NCBI GenBank assembly: GCA_964304625.1
Contig: OZ199839.1
Span: 633,416-697,415, forward strand
DNA from: Kudoa neothunni
Lineage: Eukaryota > Animalia > Cnidaria
Direction of reading: 5' to 3'
DNA length: 64,000 bases
Made by a program: the position numbers and the translations under genes. The notes beneath the pieces are model-generated. The model did no database searches. It had not been told where the DNA came from and worked only from the letters and a program-made list of their open reading frames with translations. The stretch's first letter is position 1, and every line of letters begins with the position of its first letter. Below are positions 27,854-63,962 of this stretch, in pieces.

Positions 27854-29839
27854 TTAATCTCTTTTGAAGAAAATTAGCTGCACTATCGATAATATGATGG
27901 AGATGACAAGGAGGGCAATTCCAACTGCAATAATAGTTTGAGCCATACCCCTCGTGAATATTAGCACTCTAACGAATATTTCAGCATTTTGCAAATTTTT
28001 ATGATCAATATTGTAGTATTTATTGATTAAGGCCAGCGGAATCACAAGCAAAATAACTAAAAAAAGTTACGTAGGTTAAAAATTAATATATTTACATGCC
28101 ACGACTTCTAGAATAATTATAATAATAATGAACAACTTGTTATCAACAAAACCAACCAATACAGCCAGCACCAATGCACACATTAGAATTAGAACTCCAA
28201 ATACAGGAGCAACTCTTATAAAGTTTGAGACTGGAGAGGCTCCTTTTCCTACGAAAATACTTTATAATTAATCATTCATAGAGTAGATACTACTTAAACC
28301 TTTGAACGATTCACCTGTTATTAGAAACTTTGAATAAACTATATAAATTTAACAATTTAATAACTATTTTGGTTAATATACCAATATCGGTAGAGTTATC
28401 TGGTTTTTCTAAATAAAATTTAGCTGATTTCAATCATTTATAACTAACCTTGGGGAAATTCATTTGAAATGTATCCAAACAAAGAATCTAAAATTTTATT
28501 TCCGTAAAAATTCTACTTCACATGATTTTAAATGAATGTTTTTAAATCATTCATGAAACTTGATTAGTAATTCATCATACCCTCAAGTGTAAGGTTCACT
28601 TTGGTGTCATTTCCTTTTAACATTTGCCAATCATCTATATCTGTGTGAAGCTCGGCTAAAACAGCCCCATGTTCAATAATTTTTCCAAAATTTTCATCAG
28701 AATAGAAGGGTTCACTGACAACATCATTATTGGTAGAGGTAGGATCGGTTCCAGAATTATTCGGGTCGGTATTTGTATCTACCCCACTTTCAGTATCTTC
28801 GTTCACGACTTCAGTGTTAGGAGACTCTTCCGAAGTCCCGGTGTTAGAAGGCTCACTTGGTTTTTCATCGGTGTTAGAAGACTCATCTGGTTTTTCATCG
28901 ATGTTAGAAGACTCATCTAGTTTTTCATCGGTGTTAGAAGACTCATCTGGTTTTTCATCGGTGTTAGAAGACTCATCTAGTTTTTCATCGGTATTAGAAG
29001 ACTCATCAGGTTTTTCATCGGTAGCGGATGAGTCCTCGCTTGGACTTGCGGTGGTAGCGGCAGTCTTCTCTGTTTCATTTTTCTTCGATATAAGCTTAGT
29101 AGTAATCGAATCTATAAAAGGTTAAATTAGAATAAGGAACAAAGATACATGTTGAAAGATAGGAATAGCTTGTATGGCATAGTCCAATATCATCGGGGAA
29201 GGGATCAGGGTATTTGGCGAGATCCTTGAATGGTATGTCATTGGCTTCCAATAAAATGGCTTCAATAGCTGCTTCTTTTACATTATATTTTTCTAAATCG
29301 GCTTCATTAGTAGGTTTTTTTAATTTGGTCGTATTTCCAAGTTTTTGGAAAAATTCGTCAACAGTCTCTGAGATAAATGCAGTTTTCAGAAACGATTTGT
29401 CATATTCTATTTTGAAAACTTCAAAATATTCTTTTACATCCTCTAACTCAAGCATCGCTAAGTTTTTTATCAAGTTTTCATTAGCATTCGTCATATTTCC
29501 AATTGTTTGATTGGTATAGAAGAACCATGTTTCATGAAAAGATTTTTCTGGTACTTTAATACCCTTGGCTCCCGTGATTTTGGGGAAGAAAACTATCGAA
29601 AGCCATACGCCGTAATGTGATTCCTTTCCGAGTAGATTTGAAGCTGTAAATCTTGCCGAATGAAACTTTGAAATGTTAAACAAACATCCAGTATGTATTC
29701 CACCAACATAGAGGTAGAATTTGTTCCCCAATAACATATAGGCTCGAACATTATTGTCTGAAGCATAGCCAACAATAAACAGAATTATCTCTATCCCCAA
29801 TAGTAGGGTAGTAATAACCATGAAGACAAACTTTAACAT
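27854..29839 (-). CDS. Four-pass membrane protein with claudin/PMP22-like topology and a very large first loop containing an acidic 10-aa repeat (about 550 aa; may extend 5' to about 30068)
   Basis: N-terminal TM (FVFMVITTLLLGIEIILFIVGYAS). Exon 29149-29839, a repeat exon ~28580-29111, and several mini-exons. Then three C-terminal TMs: VAPVFGVLILMCALVLAVLVGFV, LFIIIIILEVVA-LVIPLALI, AQTIIAVGIALLVISIILSIVQLIFF. Confidence 0.7.
28841..29030 (-). repeat. Coding 30-bp tandem repeat, about 6.5 units, encoding TDEK(P/L)DESSN
   Basis: Unit TTTTTCATCGGTGTTAGAAGACTCATCT(G/A)G on the + strand. Confidence 0.95.
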
Positions 29840-36735: not shown

Positions 36736-37287
36736 TTGTACACAATACTAGCAAATATCAAAAGAACGTGTTTACTGTTTACTGCTTATAATTTTGAATT
36801 TCTAATATCCAAACAATTAAACTCAGCCTGATAAAAATAAAGCTAATCAATCGGCTGAATAAATTTACCTTATGGGATTAAATAATTAAGGAATCAACAC
36901 TATCAGAAGCATGGGGAACCAAAAAAATATAAAAATTATCTTTTCGTTCCTGGCGTTTTCAGTCAAAATCCTGCTATATTGGTACATGCATTCTCTCATT
37001 TTTTTATGACTATATTAAAATGTAAACAAGAAGTTTTAATCAACACTCATCTAATCTACCAAGCGCACTTGCGAAGTATTTTGCTGGCGAACTCAAAACG
37101 ACCCACCAGAGTTCCGTCTGCGCATGCGACTTTAACGAAATACACTACCTAGAGGAATGATTGCATTATTATTAGGCCGTGCCGTGCCGTACCGCATCTA
37201 GTTGTCAGCTGTAGCCTACGATACCACCCACTCACAGCCATGTATGCAAAATACGCCGCAACCGCGGAATTTTTACTGATTAATCGC

Positions 37288-37445
37288 CCGGCTCCGCGCG
37301 CACGCAGAGCTCGCTAACAAAAATTATACGCCCCAGTTACCCATATCGGATAATGGCGGAGGTTAGCAGACGCATAGTGCAAGGCGCAGCCTCGCCCCGG
37401 ACGCAGTCTATACATGATCAAACCACGCCTGCATCAAGTAAGTGA
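37288..37445 (-). ncRNA. RNU1: Variant U1 snRNA (5' arm UCACUUACUUGA)
   Basis: SL1 with loop GAUCAUGUAU, SL2 loop CUUGCACUAU, SL3, Sm site AAUUUUUG and SL4 GCUCUGCGUGCGCGCGGAGC. Colinear with the copy at 37801. Confidence 0.9.
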
Positions 37446-37500
37446 ATAGCGAGGCGTCCGCATTGCATTAATACCGTAGTAGCCGAACACACCTTCGTTT

Positions 37501-37514
37501 ATAATGACGTCACA
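37501..37514 (-). promoter_or_regulatory. Candidate snRNA proximal sequence element TGTGACGTCATTAT of the variant U1 (-69 to -56)
   Basis: Identical 14-mer at an identical distance upstream of both U1 genes. Confidence 0.65.
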
Positions 37515-37731
37515 ATGTTGATATGGAGAGCAAATCAATTAGGTAGAGATTTGAGAACATGAACAAACTAAAATTATATTTTTTCATTTAAGATAAAATT
37601 GTCCAAAAATTAATTGAAATTTTTTAAATAAATGGATAACTATAGAAATTTTTAAAATTGTTAGCAAATGTAAAAATGATTTTCCAATAAAATTTGTAGG
37701 AATCAAGTTAGAATAAATAGATTCTGCAGTC

Positions 37732-37745
37732 TGTGACGTCATTAT
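37732..37745 (+). promoter_or_regulatory. Candidate snRNA proximal sequence element TGTGACGTCATTAT of the canonical U1 (-69 to -56)
   Basis: Same 14-mer and spacing as at 37501-37514; the position matches metazoan PSEs. Confidence 0.65.
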
Positions 37746-37800
37746 GAAAAATATCGAGAACGCTCGTGTAGCATTAAAAACTTCGGATGCGCTTGCTCGT

Positions 37801-37959
37801 TTACTTACCTGACGCAGGGAGTGTGGCGATCAAGCATTCTACCTCCCCGGGGCGAGGCATCGCCTTGCACCATGCGTTTGCTGACCTCTGTGATTGTCCA
37901 AAATTGGGCAACTCGGGCGTGTAATTTTTGTTAGCTGGTTCTGCGTGCGCGCGGAGCCA
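37801..37959 (+). ncRNA. RNU1: U1 snRNA (canonical arm ACUUACCUG)
   Basis: TTACTTACCTG...GATCA...GGGCGAGG...TTGCAC...GCTGACC...AACTCG...TAATTTTTG...CTGCGTGCGCGCGG, colinear with metazoan U1. Confidence 0.95.
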
Positions 37960-39719
37960 TGGAATTTAACCAGCAAAAAATTTTTCGTACCACTTTTAAC
38001 TTACTTTTTCTGCTCGTGTGGTATCGTCGTTTGTTTGCAAGTAGGTGTAAGCTATAGCTGGTGACCAATTTAATTTATTTGTTCGGTGTTTTGTTGAGTC
38101 TTTTTGCTAAAAGACATCGTACGTGTGCCAACTTGGTGCTCACGGGGAAGCGTCCGACGGATGTCAGCGATTGTTTCGCTTGTGTATAAAATCAGAATAT
38201 CTCCATAGAGAGTTTATTTATTTAAATACCTTCTCCTAAACAAATAATTTGATATGTATTCTGCCGGGCATTGTGTATTTTTGTGGGTTTTCGGTACTTG
38301 TGTGTAAAAGCACCCAAAATAAATTAAATTCGGTGGGTATAACGCCCCCATTTGAAGCAAACCTTCGTTTAATAAGAATTTTATCATGCGCGAAGTGTAA
38401 ACTTCCAAATTATTATATCCAAACAATAGCCACTCTGTGGCATGGAAACTCCTTCAGCATTATATATTACTAACACGGAAACCTGGCATATTTGTTCAGT
38501 ATTTCGGGAATAAATCTATTAAATAATTATTATTCAGATAAAGATAGACTGTGCATAATATTTTAGACAAATAAGAGCTTGAAAGGCAATAAAGTCAATG
38601 TTCGGGACATGTTGAGTCTAAAAACTTATTTCAATAAATCCCAAAACAGAAAATTGCATATAAAACTGTAGCTATTGCTCGAATTTTTTAATGGGCCGTA
38701 TGGATATCGTATCACTTAATCGTGGACGTAACAGTCATTACAAAGCTAATTTAGAAATAAACTAAAAACATTGATTGAAGTTTTGAAGGAAAACAATAAA
38801 TTAACTTTTCATTACATGGTTTTATGAAATGCATCATCACATTTCAACAAATTTCTTTCCTTGGCGTTTAATATTAAAATCTTAATGAATAATTATAATA
38901 GTTGAAGAATACAAGCAAAACTTATGATATTGTTTTTCTTGGTTCTGTCTTGGTCTTGCGAAATTATAGATCAGTCCTTGACATTGTCCCTTTTGAGTTT
39001 CACTTCTCCTCGCTCCCTTATCCAAAATTAATCATAATCATAATGTGGATTATGAGTTCCATTTGGACAAATAATCTCATAATAAGCCCTAGGCAGTCTT
39101 AATGGAAGATATATTTATTACAATAATAAAAGTTAATGATAAAAGAAAATAAAGTTTAAAAATCTTATTTTATTTATTATTTTTTCGATAATGGGGGAGT
39201 ATACACCCTACCAAAATCAGCCTTATTTCATTTTTATAACATCCCCGATGTTATAAAAATCACATTATACGTAATTTCAGAATATTGATAGTACCAACAA
39301 TTAGCAACTTTGCACATAAAATATTTTGTTAAATGTAGTTGGGCAAACTCGTCGCGTGCAAATCTATCAGCTCAACTAATTCTCTCGTAATTTTTCTTAA
39401 GATTAAGCCTTTAAAACCAATCAATAAGGCTTCCAGCACGTATATATTCTAAAATCTAATAATTTAGAATGATCTGTGACTCTATTTTTATCAACACCCC
39501 TGAAGAATAATGTTAGTCTTGTTTAATTTTATATAACTTGTCATCCAGATAGCAAGTTGAGTTTTTCTGGAAGTAAGAATCATATTTATACGGAGAAAAT
39601 TTTATCTACAATCTACACGACTAAAGATGATCAACGACAGTTTATTATTTAATTCTAAAAGTTGAATCTTTGATGAAATTTTTACTTGAAAAGAGTTTAA
39701 TTTATAGAATACCAAATAG

Positions 39720-41292: not shown

Positions 41293-44200
41293 ATGCAGGT
41301 CAGCTCCAATGAAAGTTCTGATGAAGATAATCAGTCAACAATTGTTGCTGGAGAGACGACAATTTTGCTGGAACCAGTTAAATTTGAATTGGGGATTAAT
41401 TCGCAAAAAAGTCAATTGAATGGTACTTAAATTTTTTTTATTATTGTTATATTGTTCATATAGATGTGGATATATTAAATCAACCAAAGACTATTCATTT
41501 AGGTATTTCATATGTTTAAGTTTATAAGAATTAATCGTTATACGATGTAGAAATAAACTCTAAAAAGAATACCATAAAAAATGAAAAGTATCCTTTTGAT
41601 TTCATTAGGATAAATATAAAATTGAATTAGAAAAAGACCCAAAAATATTGGCGATTGGGATAAACATACATCCGGATTTGGAATGAAGATGTTGCTTAAA
41701 ATGGGCTATAAAGTTGGGGAAGGTCTAGGCAAAGATGCATCTGTAAGTATTGATATATTTTTGTCTAATCGGTTGTAAATGGTCAACTTCAGTTGTGTTA
41801 AATACTTGAATTTATCATCGAATGATTAATCATAATTCGATTCAATGTCATATAATTTAATATCTGAGATATAATCATTTTTAGGGTATAGTGGAGCCTA
41901 TCCAAGCGACATTAAGGCAAAAAAGGTCTGGGCTTGGGGCCGATGGACCGGAGTTAGATGTTGCTTACAATCATAACAAAGTTCCAACAGATCAAATCTA
42001 CAAAGAACAACAATCTAAAGCGATTCCATTGTGGAAAAAGTCATCTAAAAAAGTAGTGGTTTTAGGCGGTATATTATTAAACCTTGTGTGCTCAATATAG
42101 AAAGAGAAATATCTCTATAAAACACTCGAAGAGATTGATGTGACGCAGTTTTTGGTAATTTTTGTAGTATTTTTAATTTTAGACTGAAAGCCAGAAATTG
42201 GGCGATAAACAAACACCAAATAGAGAAAACCGACTATCTCATGTTAAGGTTTTGTCTCGTATTGTTATCCTATTATTGGAATTGTGTTTAAGGTGATTGA
42301 TATGCGTGAGAGGGAAATGCAAGTTCATAATGATTATGACACGTTTTCTAAAATTGAGATGGAAAAGAAGAAACGAGTTTTTCGTCGTTTTGATGTCCCT
42401 GAGTTAGTTCTCAACTTGAAACAGCTTATCAGTATATCAGAGGACAAAATATCTACTTTGTGTCGAAAGTAAGTCGTAACTAGGGCTTTAATCCCGAGTA
42501 TTGAGAATTGGGAATTGAGAATAAACTTTTACGAGATTTAAAATGTCGATATATTCTACATATAATTGAGGTTTATGCAAGTTGAATTTCATAGTCGAAA
42601 TAAAGTCGTGAATGCTATAGATTTACGAGCTTTTTCTTATCTTTACCAACAGTTTTGCTGATCTTTATAAAACGAACGAAAAATCGATCGATTAAATCGT
42701 CTGAGATAAGGTGTTCTATAATTTATTGGGGCTGTTGCTATTGGGCTAATTAGTTTAATCTTAAGTCGCAGCTTTCAAATTTTATGTGCTATAATCCACT
42801 ATGAAATAATGCATTGGGAATTTTAAAAATTAAAACTATGTTTTTTCACCTCGTTAACTTTGCAAAAAGTTATTGGATTTTATTATTCTCCATTACTTAA
42901 TGATTTGTTGATGAATAATTATCATTTAAAGATACTAGTAAGATAGTTTATTAATAAATATTTCGTTTTTACGATTTAAGCTGACATACATTAAAATAAG
43001 CTAGGTATAATTATTTAATCAATAATGAACAAATTGTAGATAAATAATTTCACCATCCATATATCTGTATCATTGGATTATTGAAAAAAAACTACAAGTC
43101 TGGTTGTCAATTCCGTGAAATTTTCTTTGCTATTATATTATTACATACATCGGTTTAAAATATATGTAAAAAAGTTTTTGATTATATTAATAATACAGAA
43201 ATTTATAGTACTTGAGGCGCTTCAATCTCGCCTGTTATTACAAATCACTTTAGAGATTAAAAACAATTATTAAAATTTTACTATAAAACAAATAAATAGA
43301 TATATTTAATTAGATTAAAAAATTATTCGTAGTGTTTATACTCCGCGAAATTGAACATTATAACTTTAAATATCAAGATTTTAACAGTAATTGATGATAA
43401 ACGATTCCTAAATAAGAATAAAGAGTATAAGAATATAAGATTATAGATATTAAGGCTTTACCAGTTTACGAACAAAAAAATCAATTATCACATACGCTAT
43501 TATTGTGATCAATTTTAAAATTGGATTTATCTCAAAACTACAATTTTAATTTTAATCTTTTTATTGTTGTATTTATAATTAATTCTTTATTCTAAAATTC
43601 AGTTCCCTCGTTGAATTCTTTAATTATATAAACATTTATAATTTCCTGTTAATGAAAATATTATTATAAATAAATATTATCGTAATTTCTTTTATATATT
43701 AGCAAAAGTCAACCTAAAACATGCGGCTGTGGTTAAAATACTCATATTAATCCCTTATGGAGCGCCTTAGACTCCAAGAGTATAGGGATTAAAAAATATC
43801 AATCTTATGATTAGGAATTTTGGAAAAAATATGCTCGTTACTCAATTCATTGGCTGAACTTACATCCGATGCTTTTATATTTTCTAAGCAATCGGTTAGT
43901 TCATCATACGTTATACTTTCGCAGCCCAATGTCATTTTAATCATATCAATTGAATAAGCTCTAAATCGATATGATACCACAAAAATTCGTATTTCTAATT
44001 TAACAAAACATCAGGTTCTTAACAGCAAATTTAAAATAATGTAATTTTAAAAAATTAAACCAAACATAACGAAGATAAATTTTATGCATATACTTAAACT
44101 CGAATTTTAACAACAGAAAGGTGTCATTTAATGTATAGGTTGGCTTGTGGAGCACAAGATGATCCATTAAGAGTTAAATTTAAGGTTCAGTCTTCATTGA

Positions 44201-46785
44201 TTAACATTGACAAATAAAGAAACAAGCTATAATAACAAAAATATAAAACATCATTTAAATGAGTATTTGCACTCAAATTTAACCACCCGCAATATTAAGA
44301 TAGAATCTTCTTTCTCTAATTATGAAGTTACTCTGTGTTTGAAGCATCAAGTTAGTCTCGATACTCGAGTTTTGAACATCCCACAAATGTCTATTGGTCG
44401 CAACATTAATTATTGGTGTAGGAAACACACAAACCAAGATCTCCTCGTTAGTTATATATACGAGGTGGAATCACTTCAAAATCAATTAGATAACTGTTCT
44501 AGTGAGAGAAATAAAATGACTTCCATTGTTGATATGCTAGAAAAGTATGTTGAGAAATAAGCTGTTGTGGTTTTTAACCAATTAAAACGATTTTAGTTGT
44601 ATTGTGGCACCAAACGCTAATTCGAAGAATTCTCCATTAAATTCTTTAAAATTGCCGAATCCTGTTGAAGCTCTCGATTACAATTTAAATGTGCTAGAAA
44701 AGTTGGTCAATTTCCACGAATATTTCGTAACTATGCTCTCAACGATTCATACTATTAAGATTATTAAGGAATATGGATTGTGTGATTTATGCGGTCCATT
44801 GTTTGTTGGTTGGATTGACATACTACTTATTACTGTCAACCCCAATATACTACAGCTGAATGATAGTGTGGTTGAATTTTTTAAAAAGTGGTGTGAGTTT
44901 TCACAAAAAGAAAACGAGCAGCGAATTCTGTTTGATGTTTCCATCTCCACCCAACCAATCACAACCAGTTTTGAGATGTACGAAAAAGTTCTCTGGTTTA
45001 TGATATTACCCAGATTGAAAGAAGTGATCAAGTAAGTATATTTAGTTTTGGTATTTTTGTATTAATTTTACTCGTTGATTATAGTGGATATAACCAACCG
45101 GTTTATTTTTCCAACCAATTGGTGGATTTCTTGGACAAATGGATGGATTTATTCCCAAAATGGTTTAGACAACATCTGTTTGACCATCTGATCTATCCGA
45201 AATTGAAGGTATTTTTTAAGTGTGTTGTTTCTAATTGATTTTTTGCGTTGACTCAGAACTTTGTTGAGCAATGGAATCCGAAGGATAGATCGGTTGCTCT
45301 AGCTCATGAATGGATTCTTCCATGGATCCCACTGTTCGTTGATCGGTTCGAAATCACCGACCAGCTCTTTTATATGGTTCAAATGAAGTTGTGCTCACTG
45401 CTAAGGGAGTGGAATCCATGCGATCGTTCAATCAAGAGTGTGATCACTCCTTGGTTGGATAAATTCTCAGAAAAATCTGTTAAAAATATAATGCAAAATA
45501 TGATCGTTCCAAAACTGGAGCTTCTGCTGTTGAACGACTTTGAAATTAATCCTTCAGACCAAGTTATTGGTAAGGCAAACGACCACTATCATACCATACA
45601 ATAATTTCTGCATAATAATAATAATAATAATACTCAATCAATCAGTCGATTGATCGATTTTTAATGGCTCAAAATTTTTAGAACCATTTCAAGATTTTAT
45701 GGATTGGTATTCGATTGTGCCAGATCAACACATGGTGGGACTGTTAAATAAACATTTTTTCAAAAAATGGCATTCCATTTTACACTGCTGGCTGAATCAA
45801 GAAGCCCCTAATTACGAAGAAATCGCCATTTGGTAAGTACATCAATATTAAACCCGCTACCTTTAACTATTTTCTGGTGGAACCAACTCCACAGTTTTTT
45901 CGAGACCAAATTTTGTTCACAAGAATACTTGTTTTAAAAGAAATACTCTCAATGCGCATATATTGGCGCTTTTTAAATACTATTTCGATATTAACATATC
46001 ATTTCTAGGTATAAAGGATGGAAAAGTTTGATACCGAAGTCTTTGGTTGAGTATGAATCTACCCAAAGTGAGTTAATTAATTATGTTTGACGAGAAATTA
46101 ATTACACATATATCATCGAAAATTTAATAAGTATCACATTAATAGTTCATTCGTTTGTGATAATTTGAATTTGGTGCGATTTTATATGCTCAAAATTGTT
46201 GATAATGTAGCTCAAGGTTAACAAATATTTACACAATTTTCTCTAGAGAATCTCTCATTAGCCTTACACATGATCAACTATTCGTCCCAAGGAATCGATA
46301 TTGGAGATACACTCGAACAATTCATTGCCAAGTAACATTGGTTGATCTTGATGAGCTTGTAAATGGATTATACTTTGGTAGATATGAGGAAGAATCCAAA
46401 CGACAAACCCCAAAGATCTCGTCGCCGCCTCCTACGCAACAAGTATTCTTCTTTTCGGCAAATCATTCGTACGATAATCATAAAACAATAGAATACTGCC
46501 ACTATTAAAGTGAGCAATTTCTCAACCAACAACTTCAAAGATATCATCGAACAATATGCCAGTGAGCGGGATATATTATTTAGACCGCTAGCCTCCAATA
46601 GTATCAGTTACAGTGATGGAAAAACTTATTATCAATTCGGAAATGCGGTCATCTTCATCGATCGTGGGGTCATATTTGTGAAGACACCAACCGATGGTAA
46701 CCAGAACAAATTGACCGCTAGTTCCACAGTTAAATGGCATCCTATTTCACTTCAGGACCTCATTGAATCGGCTGTTCAATATTAG
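41293..46785 (+). CDS. TFIP11: Tuftelin-interacting protein 11 (spliceosome disassembly factor, G-patch + GCFC), multi-exon
   Basis: G-patch WDKHTSGFGMKMLLKMGYKVGEGLGKDAS-GIVEPIQ; VKVIDMR; VPELVLNL; HEWILPWIP; FEINPSDQ; PNYEEIAIWYKGWKSLIP; C-terminal FKDIIEQYA...YQFG...IDRGVIFV...WHPISLQDL. Confidence 0.95.
43751..44173. mobile_element. piggyBac-like MITE in a TFIP11 intron
   Basis: TTAA on both flanks; imperfect TIRs TCCCTTATGGAGCGCCTTAGACTCCA / TGGAGCACAAGATGATCCATTAAGAG. Confidence 0.5.
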
Positions 46786-47969
46786 AATTGGGTTGTGGAT
46801 GGTGACAAAGATTTCCAACCTAATGTTGTATTATATTTTAGTATGACTTGTATCTGTCTTGCTTTTTTATCATTGCACGTGCCTGTTTATCAAATTTTTA
46901 TTTTCATAGATCCACTAATTAATAGATGCAAGAATGCTGCTCGCAGCTTCATCATGAAAATGTTTAAAAATGATTCCATATTTTCTTCATACTTCGTCTT
47001 CGTCACACATCCCTTGCTTTCTTTATAATTTTGAACTTTATTCTTTTCGCAATGGTAATGAACATTTTAATAATCAGTCTCCAGAAATAATGTGATCATT
47101 CGTGCGATTTTTGATAAACTTCTTCACCTGTGCCGATGAATCTTTAATTTAAATGGCCTTCCTATTTCCTGCCACGTCTGAATTTTTCAACCTACATTTT
47201 TATGGCATCTTTGATTGTTTTTATTGAGATTAAACACCGTATTATTCTAATTTTATCGACAAAATATTTTTTTATTTTTATTGTAAATCAAAATATTGGC
47301 TAAATGAAATAATGATAATTATTTAAGATAAAAATTCCAATGTAATTATTCTCATAATTAAAATCTTAAATCACGCAATATCCAATTAATAAATTTTCAC
47401 TAAAAATAAAAAATTACAATGTAAAATAAGATAATAAATTCCGAATAGCAAAATCAAGCTACATCCGCAATACATACTTCCGAGTTTGGCGACTAGCATT
47501 GAATGTATGTTTTTAACCGCTGTAATATAACATTCTTATTTCACTTTTTATTGTACAAAAAAAGGAAAACCGATCATAAATAAAATCTGCCCCGCTAATA
47601 GACATAACCTTTAATTTTTGTGATATCTGATAAACTACGAAAACAATTTAATAATCGTGTATTGTAATAATTATTAGAGAGATAAGCAATGCTACGGTTA
47701 TTTTCTTCTACAGAAAACGTCGAAGAATTCACTTACAATACACAATACCCAATACAGTCAGGGAGTAAATAACTTGGAAGATAAATTTAATTGTTCATAT
47801 CGACAACAATCGAAAATGTGATTATGCTTTTATTAAAAAAACAATTCAATAATAGGAATTGTTGGTGAGTAGAAAATTAGCAAATAATACTTTGAATTGA
47901 GAAATTAATCCCAGATTATTAGACAATAAAACATACAAAACAATATTAAAACCTAAAAAATGAGCACAA

Positions 47970-54593: not shown

Positions 54594-54664
54594 TGCACTA
54601 GCCGGGATTCGAACCCGGGTCACCCGCGTGGCAGGCGAGTATTCTACCACTAAACCACCAGTGC
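54594..54664 (-). tRNA. tRNA-Gly (GCC)
   Basis: GCACTGGTGGTTTAGTGGTAGAATACTCGCCTGCCACGCGGGTGACCCGGGTTCGAATCCCGGCTAGTGCA forms a cloverleaf with A/B boxes; downstream T-runs. Confidence 0.97.
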
Positions 54665-62699: not shown

Positions 62700-63962
62700 C
62701 ATGGGTCATATAAGGGACAATGGATCATGACCTAATTTTCTTTCGAAACTGATGATGAGGAAAAAACCTTGATTGTGGTCGTTGTTATTCGAGATGCAGA
62801 TATTTCGGAACCAGTTAGTATTTGGGACGTCGAAGATGCGTCTTTTTTGGAAACGATTACTTTAAATTTTATTTTGACAATGATCTCCTCGAAAATATTG
62901 TCTTAGAGACAAATTTATATGCCGTTTAGCAAAATTCCGGTTTTAATACTGATATTGAAGAAATTCAAAAATATATTGGTGTCTTGATTATCATGGGCAT
63001 AGTTAAAATGCTCAGATATAGGTGTTGTCGGGCCAAACTCTTGCAATATCCCATTGTTACTGAATGTGTCTCGAGAAATCGCTTCGAGGCAATGTCGAAA
63101 TAATTACACTTCGTATGTGATACTAACATTGTGACCAACCCAAACTCTCCCAAATATGACGAAATTGCAAAAATTCGCCCTTCACTAAATTCGATCAGAG
63201 AAGCCTGCCTGAAAGTAGAATACGAGAGGAATAATTCTATACCACCCCCAACTTTTTCTAAAGAAAAGAAACATTTTTTCGGTTGGTTTGACAGCATTGT
63301 TGTCACTCTCTCTTCCACCCATTCTTCAATTGAGCCTGCTTCATTTACAAGAAGATTTGACCGATCCAAGAAAAGAATAATAGAGGTAACTTGTCCAGCA
63401 GTTGTCAACGAAAATAATAAAAACATGGGAGGGATTGACCTCTCTGATATGTTGATGTCGCTTTATGTTATGCAACATAAATACAAGAAATATTATCATC
63501 GAATTTTCTTCTGGTGCTTGAACACGTCAATAATCAATTCTTGGGTACTATGCCGACGAAATTGCGCTGTTAGAAATGTACCGAATAAGAATATTTTAGA
63601 TTTGTTAGATTTTTCATTAAGTATATGTGAAAATAATATATTCTACAAAAAAGTGCTGCTTACCGACCAAATCAGGTTTGATGACGTAGGTCACTATCCT
63701 GAGATACGTACCGACAGTTCTAGGTGTCGCGTTTGTCAAATGAAAACTAGAATATGTTGTATAATTATTTAAATCAATAAAATATCTGCTTTATTACTTA
63801 CTTATATTCCCATTGTCCCATATATGGAACAGTTGAAAAGTTAGGAATAAATTCCAAAAAAATAATTCGGCTGGCGTAAAAATAATTAAAATGGAAAAAA
63901 CAAACACAATTAATGTAGAATAATAATTTTCAGGTCGAAATGAAAAATTGGGAGCGAAAGGG
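62700..63962 (+). mobile_element. piggyBac element with internally deleted, pseudogenised PGBD transposase
   Basis: VSRNRFE, KIRP, CPAVVNENNKNMGGIDLSD, KYYHRIFFW...INSW and C-terminal RCRVC. Right end GGAGCGAAAGGG|TTAG. Subterminal IR CATATAAGGGACAATGG / CCATTGTCCCATATATG. The catalytic core is missing. Confidence 0.9.

Follow-up and report, generated by a model that had tools for sequence, protein, structure and literature searches.

Two U1 snRNA genes are located head to head in the window, i.e., the whole 64-kb stretch of Kudoa neothunni DNA analysed here: U1a with the canonical donor-pairing arm and U1b, a predicted variant U1 whose arm is non-canonical only at C9. U1 was the only duplicated major snRNA detected in this genome. 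In the reading favoured here, to which a probability of about 0.55 was assigned, both genes would be expressed and U1b would broaden recognition towards donors with A at -1 within one major spliceosome.

The Rfam U1 model (RF00003, gathering score 69.5) matched U1a at 37801-37960 of the plus strand with 110.2 bits and U1b at 37445-37287 of the minus strand with 90.0 bits, both copies exceeding the cut-off over the full model (model positions 1-166). The head-to-head pair with a 355-bp spacer, as described in the original prediction, was thus borne out by two full-length matches, with 355 bp between the Rfam ends. The locus comprised the following parts:

37803..37958, plus strand: U1a, the U1 snRNA gene with the canonical arm; its start is inferred at 37803, and the Rfam envelope spans 37801-37960
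37290..37443, minus strand: U1b, the gene of the variant U1 snRNA; its start is inferred at 37443, and the Rfam envelope spans 37287-37445
37446..37800, no strand: spacer of 355 bp, in which two separate opposed promoters flank an AT-rich core

The alignment of U1a with U1b gave 76% identity (124 of 163 columns, 32 mismatches), with the divergence concentrated in SL1. The original description of stems differing strongly in sequence held with regard to divergence, mostly in SL1, and was qualified by the overall identity of 76%. An inverted duplicate made by the assembly was ruled out, the copies being 24% apart.

Several other features were observed in the window. TFIP11, encoding a spliceosome disassembly factor with a GCFC domain, occupies 41297-46787 on the plus strand, beginning 3.3 kb downstream of U1a, and is a useful synteny anchor for locating the U1 pair in other Kudoa. 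Directly downstream of U1b there is an unexplained GC-rich stretch of ~220 nt (37060-37275), the end arms of which (37064-37084 and 37246-37266) can pair at 81% and which holds the only GCGCATGC palindrome of the window (37120). No gathering-level Rfam match and no convincing ORF were found in this stretch, and its fold z was -1.35. The minus-strand gene at 28057-29839 is lineage-specific, with a hydrophobic N-terminus, a low-complexity tandem peptide repeat and no Pfam match; its product is probably secreted or exposed on the surface. A tRNA-Gly(GCC) gene was located at 54594-54664 (minus strand) and a remnant of a piggyBac-type transposase (PF13843) at 62900-63772, and the gene at 1-1940 is presumably transglutaminase-like, judging by its motifs.

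The genome searched has 4 contigs and a total length of 40.26 Mb; three of the contigs measure 17.15, 12.04 and 11.05 Mb. The published Kudoa neothunni assembly has 40.2 Mb with an N50 of 12.0 Mb and a GC content of 30.4%, organized in three chromosomes and a mitochondrial circle, with an intron length of 49 bp (PMC12239612). The genome-wide RF00003 search (E<=10), which the original prediction called for, detected exactly two U1 genes among the best candidates scored, and these were the two head-to-head copies. U2, U4, U5 and U6 were each represented by one detectable copy in the genome-wide Rfam search, and the branch-point motif of U2, ACAGAGA of U6 and loop 1 of U5 were all canonical. No third U1 or U11 was revealed by Rfam at E<=10 or by the promoter-plus-Sm pattern; the best genome match for U11 (RF00548, E=2.6) was located away from the U1 locus and was not accompanied by the promoter octamer. 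The assignment of U1b itself as a U11, with an arm for RTATCCTT donors, was ruled out, as U1b matches the U1 model. Among U1 protein partners, LUC7 was represented by one locus and zf-U1 by one clear locus and a second, weaker match. The only 18S match, found with a stricter filter under which full copies may have been missed, covered the 3' third of the gene (C2:5426127-5426748) and adjoined unrelated AT-rich sequence.

The donor-pairing arms of both copies were as originally predicted:

37803..37811, plus strand: canonical donor-pairing arm of U1a, ACUUACCUG, read from the sequence (C9 at 37809)
37435..37443, minus strand: donor-pairing arm of U1b, ACUUACUUG, with the C-to-U change at position 9 (C9U), from the sequence and the cmscan alignment (changed base at 37437)

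Position 37437 of the window, at C2:670852, corresponds to position 9 of human U1, which faces the last exon nucleotide (-1). The ACUUAC core was kept in both arms, and the canonical C9-U10-G11 facing exon positions -1 to -3 was found in U1a and not in U1b, which has U9. The proposed pairing of U1b with A(-1), in addition to a wobble with G(-1), agrees with base-pairing rules and has a precedent in human cells (PMC12380619). In computed duplexes, U1b gained 2.6 kcal/mol on -1A donors and lost 2.6 kcal/mol on -1G donors. Among 27 single arm changes paired with U1a, C9U gave the largest gain and was first in 73-86% of bootstraps, but it still ranked first when exon ends were swapped for upstream exon bases as a composition control. 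The rank therefore reflects composition and was rejected as evidence. One change in nine arm positions is also no more than expected from the 20% divergence of the gene. The yeast U1 study covered C9 deletions only and no C9U.

Splice donors were collected with a two-strand gene finder trained on 328 kb of the genome, in which the exon-side donor positions were left unmodelled and the codon statistics were trained on joined predicted exons. The median intron it predicted (49 nt) was equal to the published value. Among 295 predicted introns of no more than 150 nt, the -1 position was occupied by A in 35%, G in 32%, T in 24% and C in 9%, with A at +3 in 79% and T at +6 in 55%; AA|GT was found in 59 of the 295 introns versus 38 for AG|GT. 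The usual -1G rule is largely lost in Kudoa donors. In human donors, G occupies -1 in 82% (PMC8283771), and the donors of all examined myxozoans are reduced to GTa in published logos (PMC13644364). Relative to the phase-matched coding background, G at -1 was enriched 1.6-1.7-fold and A 1.05-1.17-fold, with C depleted. An excess of A among non-G donors was observed at -1 (z ~3), but also at -2, at the base that opens the following exon and at -4 (high-confidence set). Not being position-specific, it was rejected as evidence for U1b: AT bias, a bias of the gene finder or U5 loop 1, by which exon ends are also read (PMC11732430), are as likely a source of it as U1b. In 110-295 predicted introns, -1 and +5 showed no compensation, and the sole covariation difference was a weak one, with less +6T in -1A than in -1G donors (p=0.03, uncorrected).

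Related sequences were reached as Logan contigs of two related runs. For 14 TFIP11 introns aligned with the relative, five of them read by eye, -1A was present in 6 here and in 9 in the relative, with three G/A switches at -1. The comparison exposed at least two wrong donor calls by the gene finder, so the intron counts given above carry noise. The TFIP11 contig of the relative stops 687 bp upstream of the gene, with no U1 within that short flank, and two further exon queries for the U1 locus of the relatives gave no match. The contigs of the relative had 23% GC, and one TFIP11 intron with a GT donor in Kudoa neothunni had a GC donor in the relative.

Since A at -1 is near background, its excess is unspecific and the rank of C9U stems from composition, the donors would suit a U9-type U1 and do not bear its footprint. 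Of the two effects on donor recognition originally envisaged, broadening is in accordance with A(-1) being the commonest state and AA|GT exceeding AG|GT, whereas a split into two donor classes was not upheld, as no clear covariation was present. A broadened donor recognition by the U1 pair is plausible on these sequence grounds.

In the explanation favoured here, an old inverted duplication would have produced the U1 pair, with a separate Pol II snRNA promoter for each copy, and both genes would probably be transcribed, Sm-assembled and bound by one U1 protein set. C9 of U1a would pair with G at donor -1, and U9 of U1b with A through a Watson-Crick pair or with G through a wobble. As the donors appear eroded to little beyond GTA, with about a third of them carrying -1A, U1b is expected to bind these -1A donors better, and the two RNAs would cover about two thirds of donors at -1. 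The outcome would be an overlapping, broadened recognition by one major spliceosome and not two intron classes. Expression, snRNP assembly and a splicing effect of U1b in Kudoa are what we infer. A more far-reaching version, which we regard as tentative and rather doubtful, is that U1b with C9U was selected in Kudoa, perhaps in myxozoans, as an inherited solution to eroded donors, with U1a and U1b preferring -1G and -1A, respectively.

Somewhat unlikely, but the best of the other explanations, is that U1b is a functional dosage duplicate in which C9U was tolerated and neutral, having drifted in after the erosion of donors. Such erosion would have relaxed selection at position 9, where U9 still wobbles with G, C-to-T is the mutation expected in an AT-rich genome, and donor choice is mainly settled by U5 and U6. 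The near-background -1A, the lack of -1/+5 compensation and class structure and the persistence of the top rank of C9U in the composition control are all in line with neutrality. Multicopy U1 genes usually stay near-identical, unlike U1a and U1b, which remain 24% apart, and this speaks against a simple duplicate. A dosage reason for a second copy could be found in U1 being the most abundant human snRNA (PMC11732430), and donors are eroded in all examined myxozoans, whatever their U1 (PMC13644364). However, the same change redirects human splicing despite many wild-type copies (PMC12380619), which makes its silence in one of two genes unlikely.

Helix H and stems I-IV can pair in both copies, with a weak upper SL2 stem in both. 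SL1 of U1b forms 10 consecutive pairs from largely different sequence, four of them G-U, and SL3 stays paired in spite of two double changes between U1a and U1b and several changes on one side only. For both copies, the arms of SL1 and SL3 given in the original prediction were confirmed, and the Sm site and SL4, described there as kept, were present in each. The GAUCA.G.A motif of the U1-70K loop I and the UUGCAC motif of the U1A loop II, the critical positions of which we take to be those of the human snRNP, were also found in both. The Sm sites were located as follows:

37317..37325, minus strand: Sm site of U1b, identical to that of U1a
37923..37931, plus strand: Sm site of U1a, between SL3 and SL4

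The 32 substitutions between the copies missed all 25 nt of the pre-chosen motifs (arm core, loop I, loop II and Sm site; P=0.002). Folding energy was rejected as evidence of constraint: neither copy folded better than its shuffles (z 0.07 and 0.27), and the comparison with random decay gave p ~0.06. As a separate observation, loop II reads CCUUGCAC in both copies in place of CAUUGCAC, and an alternative hairpin sequestering loop II is possible in both; U1A binding may be altered in the Kudoa lineage.

The regulatory elements of the pair were identified at the following positions:

37505..37512, minus strand: PSE-like octamer of U1b, 69 nt upstream of the start inferred for this gene, shared with U2, U4, U5 and U6
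37734..37741, plus strand: PSE-like octamer of U1a, shared with the other snRNA genes
37468..37474, minus strand: GTATTAA, the second promoter box of U1b, located 38 nt from the start of its octamer
37771..37777, plus strand: GCATTAA, the second promoter box of U1a, located 37 nt from the start of its octamer
37270..37283, minus strand: 3'-box-like element of U1b, fitting the AATCAG.AAAA form found downstream of U2 and U5
37966..37979, plus strand: 3'-box-like element of U1a, read from the sequence

The octamer TGACGTCA occurs twice in the window, once upstream of each U1, and was found 68-72 nt upstream in all six snRNA genes (U1a, U1b, U2, U4, U5 and U6). Over 17 nt, the octamer region of U1b matches the U1a element in inverted orientation (94%). 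The A of ACUUAC is the probable first base of both U1 RNAs, which would thus lack the 5' AU: its distance of 69 nt from the octamer in U1a and U1b is the same as that for U2. This probable start is a small correction to the original description. The second box, G[CT]ATTAA, was located 37-38 nt past the octamer in U1a, U1b, U4 and U5, with GTATTAA of U1b differing by one change from GCATTAA of U1a, U4 and U5. The 3'-box-like TTAA.CAG.AAAAA was present downstream of both U1 copies, so that both this box and the upstream element were kept as anticipated. The promoter boxes and the 3' box hold the spacing of other snRNAs, whereas the remaining U1 flank is largely diverged, and both U1s carry the features of Pol II snRNA genes, i.e., a PSE common to other snRNAs and a 3' box. 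The snRNA promoter of this species appears as a palindromic octamer ~70 nt upstream and a second box 37-38 nt later, with a TATA-like box instead in U6. Two similar dispersed elements, C1:1882286-1882449 and C3:10153127-10153289, both on the minus strand, have the octamer at their start and an Sm-like run downstream; they had no Rfam match and probably represent a repeat family.

The survival of the promoter boxes, 3' box, motifs and stem pairing through the divergence argues for U1b being a gene that would have been kept by selection long after duplication, its present expression apart. The view that it is not a decaying pseudogene was sustained by sequence criteria, with motifs free of substitutions (P=0.002), stems paired and the promoter kept. 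The idea that U1b, like most genes of human variant U1s (vU1s), is expressed weakly or was silenced recently and has little effect on splicing is unlikely. It would fit the lower Rfam score (90 vs 110 bits), the four G-U pairs in SL1, the mismatch in the second promoter box and the weaker constrained fold (-51.7 vs -57.8 kcal/mol for U1a), and human vU1s together make up <0.1% of U1 in 293T cells (PMC8457000). On the other hand, the protein-binding motifs, promoter boxes and 3' box are intact after ~20% divergence (P=0.002), and the 3' box of U1b is closer to the U2/U5 form than that of U1a.

U1a and U1b could also be stage-specific isoforms, for the fish and the invertebrate stage, with the arm change secondary to the changes in the stems. 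Each copy has a promoter of its own, and the sequences between the boxes have diverged, which would allow for this, as would the two hosts of the Kudoa life cycle (PMC13644364) and the embryonic and adult U1 isoforms established in flies, frogs and mice according to work cited in PMC8457000. Such a specialization is regarded as very unlikely; the core promoter boxes are nearly alike and lie within one 355-bp spacer. The least probable explanation is that the T at position 9 stems from an error in the consensus or from a heterozygous site of which it is one allele, the diploid assembly having been built at low coverage (~7x by k-mers; PMC12239612). Against this stand the published QV of 48.5, corresponding to ~1 error per 70,000 bases, and the nature of the change, which is a substitution rather than a homopolymer indel.

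Akin to the RF00003 family, both Kudoa copies have the four-way junction, loop I, loop II, Sm site, SL4 and ACUUAC core; they differ from it in U9 of U1b and, in both copies, in the probable lack of a 5' AU, in the CCUUGCAC loop II and in the UGCG loop of SL4. The closest parallel to U1b is the human U1 g.9C>T mutation, which is somatic and harmful and recurs in 1.4-1.5% of CLL and also in DLBCL (PMC12380619). In g.9C>T tumours, introns excised more often are enriched for -1A, and transduced cell lines reproduce the effect (PMC12380619); the effect of C9U on -1A donors is thus established in human cells. The human change is identical, acts beside wild-type copies and favours -1A donors, but in Kudoa it is a part of the assembled genome, affects one of two U1s and coincides with -1A donors being the commonest.

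The opinion that the U1 5' arm is nearly invariant across eukaryotes proved overstated, since altered arms occur together with canonical ones in human vU1s, Physarum and Sulcionema. The human vU1s are minor members of a family of ~178 genes, together accounting for <0.1% of U1, and the eleven found in snRNPs and spliceosomes all carry 1-3 arm changes (PMC8457000, PMC10870369). Many of them are capped and assembled, rarely affecting splicing (PMC10870369). Akin to U1b, they are diverged U1 paralogues, but U1b constitutes half of the gene complement and has a near-full promoter match. Physarum has a standard and a modified U1, while Entamoeba and Mastigamoeba have co-evolved single U1s (10.1101/2022.06.08.495308). 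In all three the arm is changed to complement the local donor, and Physarum has both forms; the changes there face intronic +3/+4 of a clear new consensus, in contrast to U1b of Kudoa, where the change faces exonic -1 and the donors are those of an animal and lack a consensus. In the diplonemid Sulcionema specki, two U1s, of which one is canonical and the other is altered at its 5' end, were proposed to serve degenerate donors; the alteration is a C-rich replacement and not a single C9U, and the available text of that report describes no head-to-head pair (PMC12621601). Fritillaria borealis, an animal with relaxed donors, also has two U1 genes, but their 5' ends are identical, and according to the authors the route followed there was not one of U1 divergence (PMC13326754); Kudoa would contrast with it in this respect. 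In the literature searched, no report of myxozoan U1 variants was found, the myxozoan splicing study covering U2 and U2AF, not U1.

An altered U1 arm beside a canonical one is therefore already known, and it is the Kudoa setting that is new: an animal whose snRNA set is minimal, a pair of U1s one arm base apart, eroded donors and the exact change seen in leukaemia. Most lineages with odd donors retain the canonical U1 arm (10.1101/2022.06.08.495308), and the two U1s, the single copies of other snRNAs and the largely lost -1G rule make Kudoa a genome in which the co-evolution of U1 with donors becomes testable. U1b of Kudoa would be a natural, tolerated counterpart of the recurrent leukaemia mutation. 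If U1b with C9U was indeed selected, a leukaemia-type U1 change would be the normal half of an animal's U1 pool.
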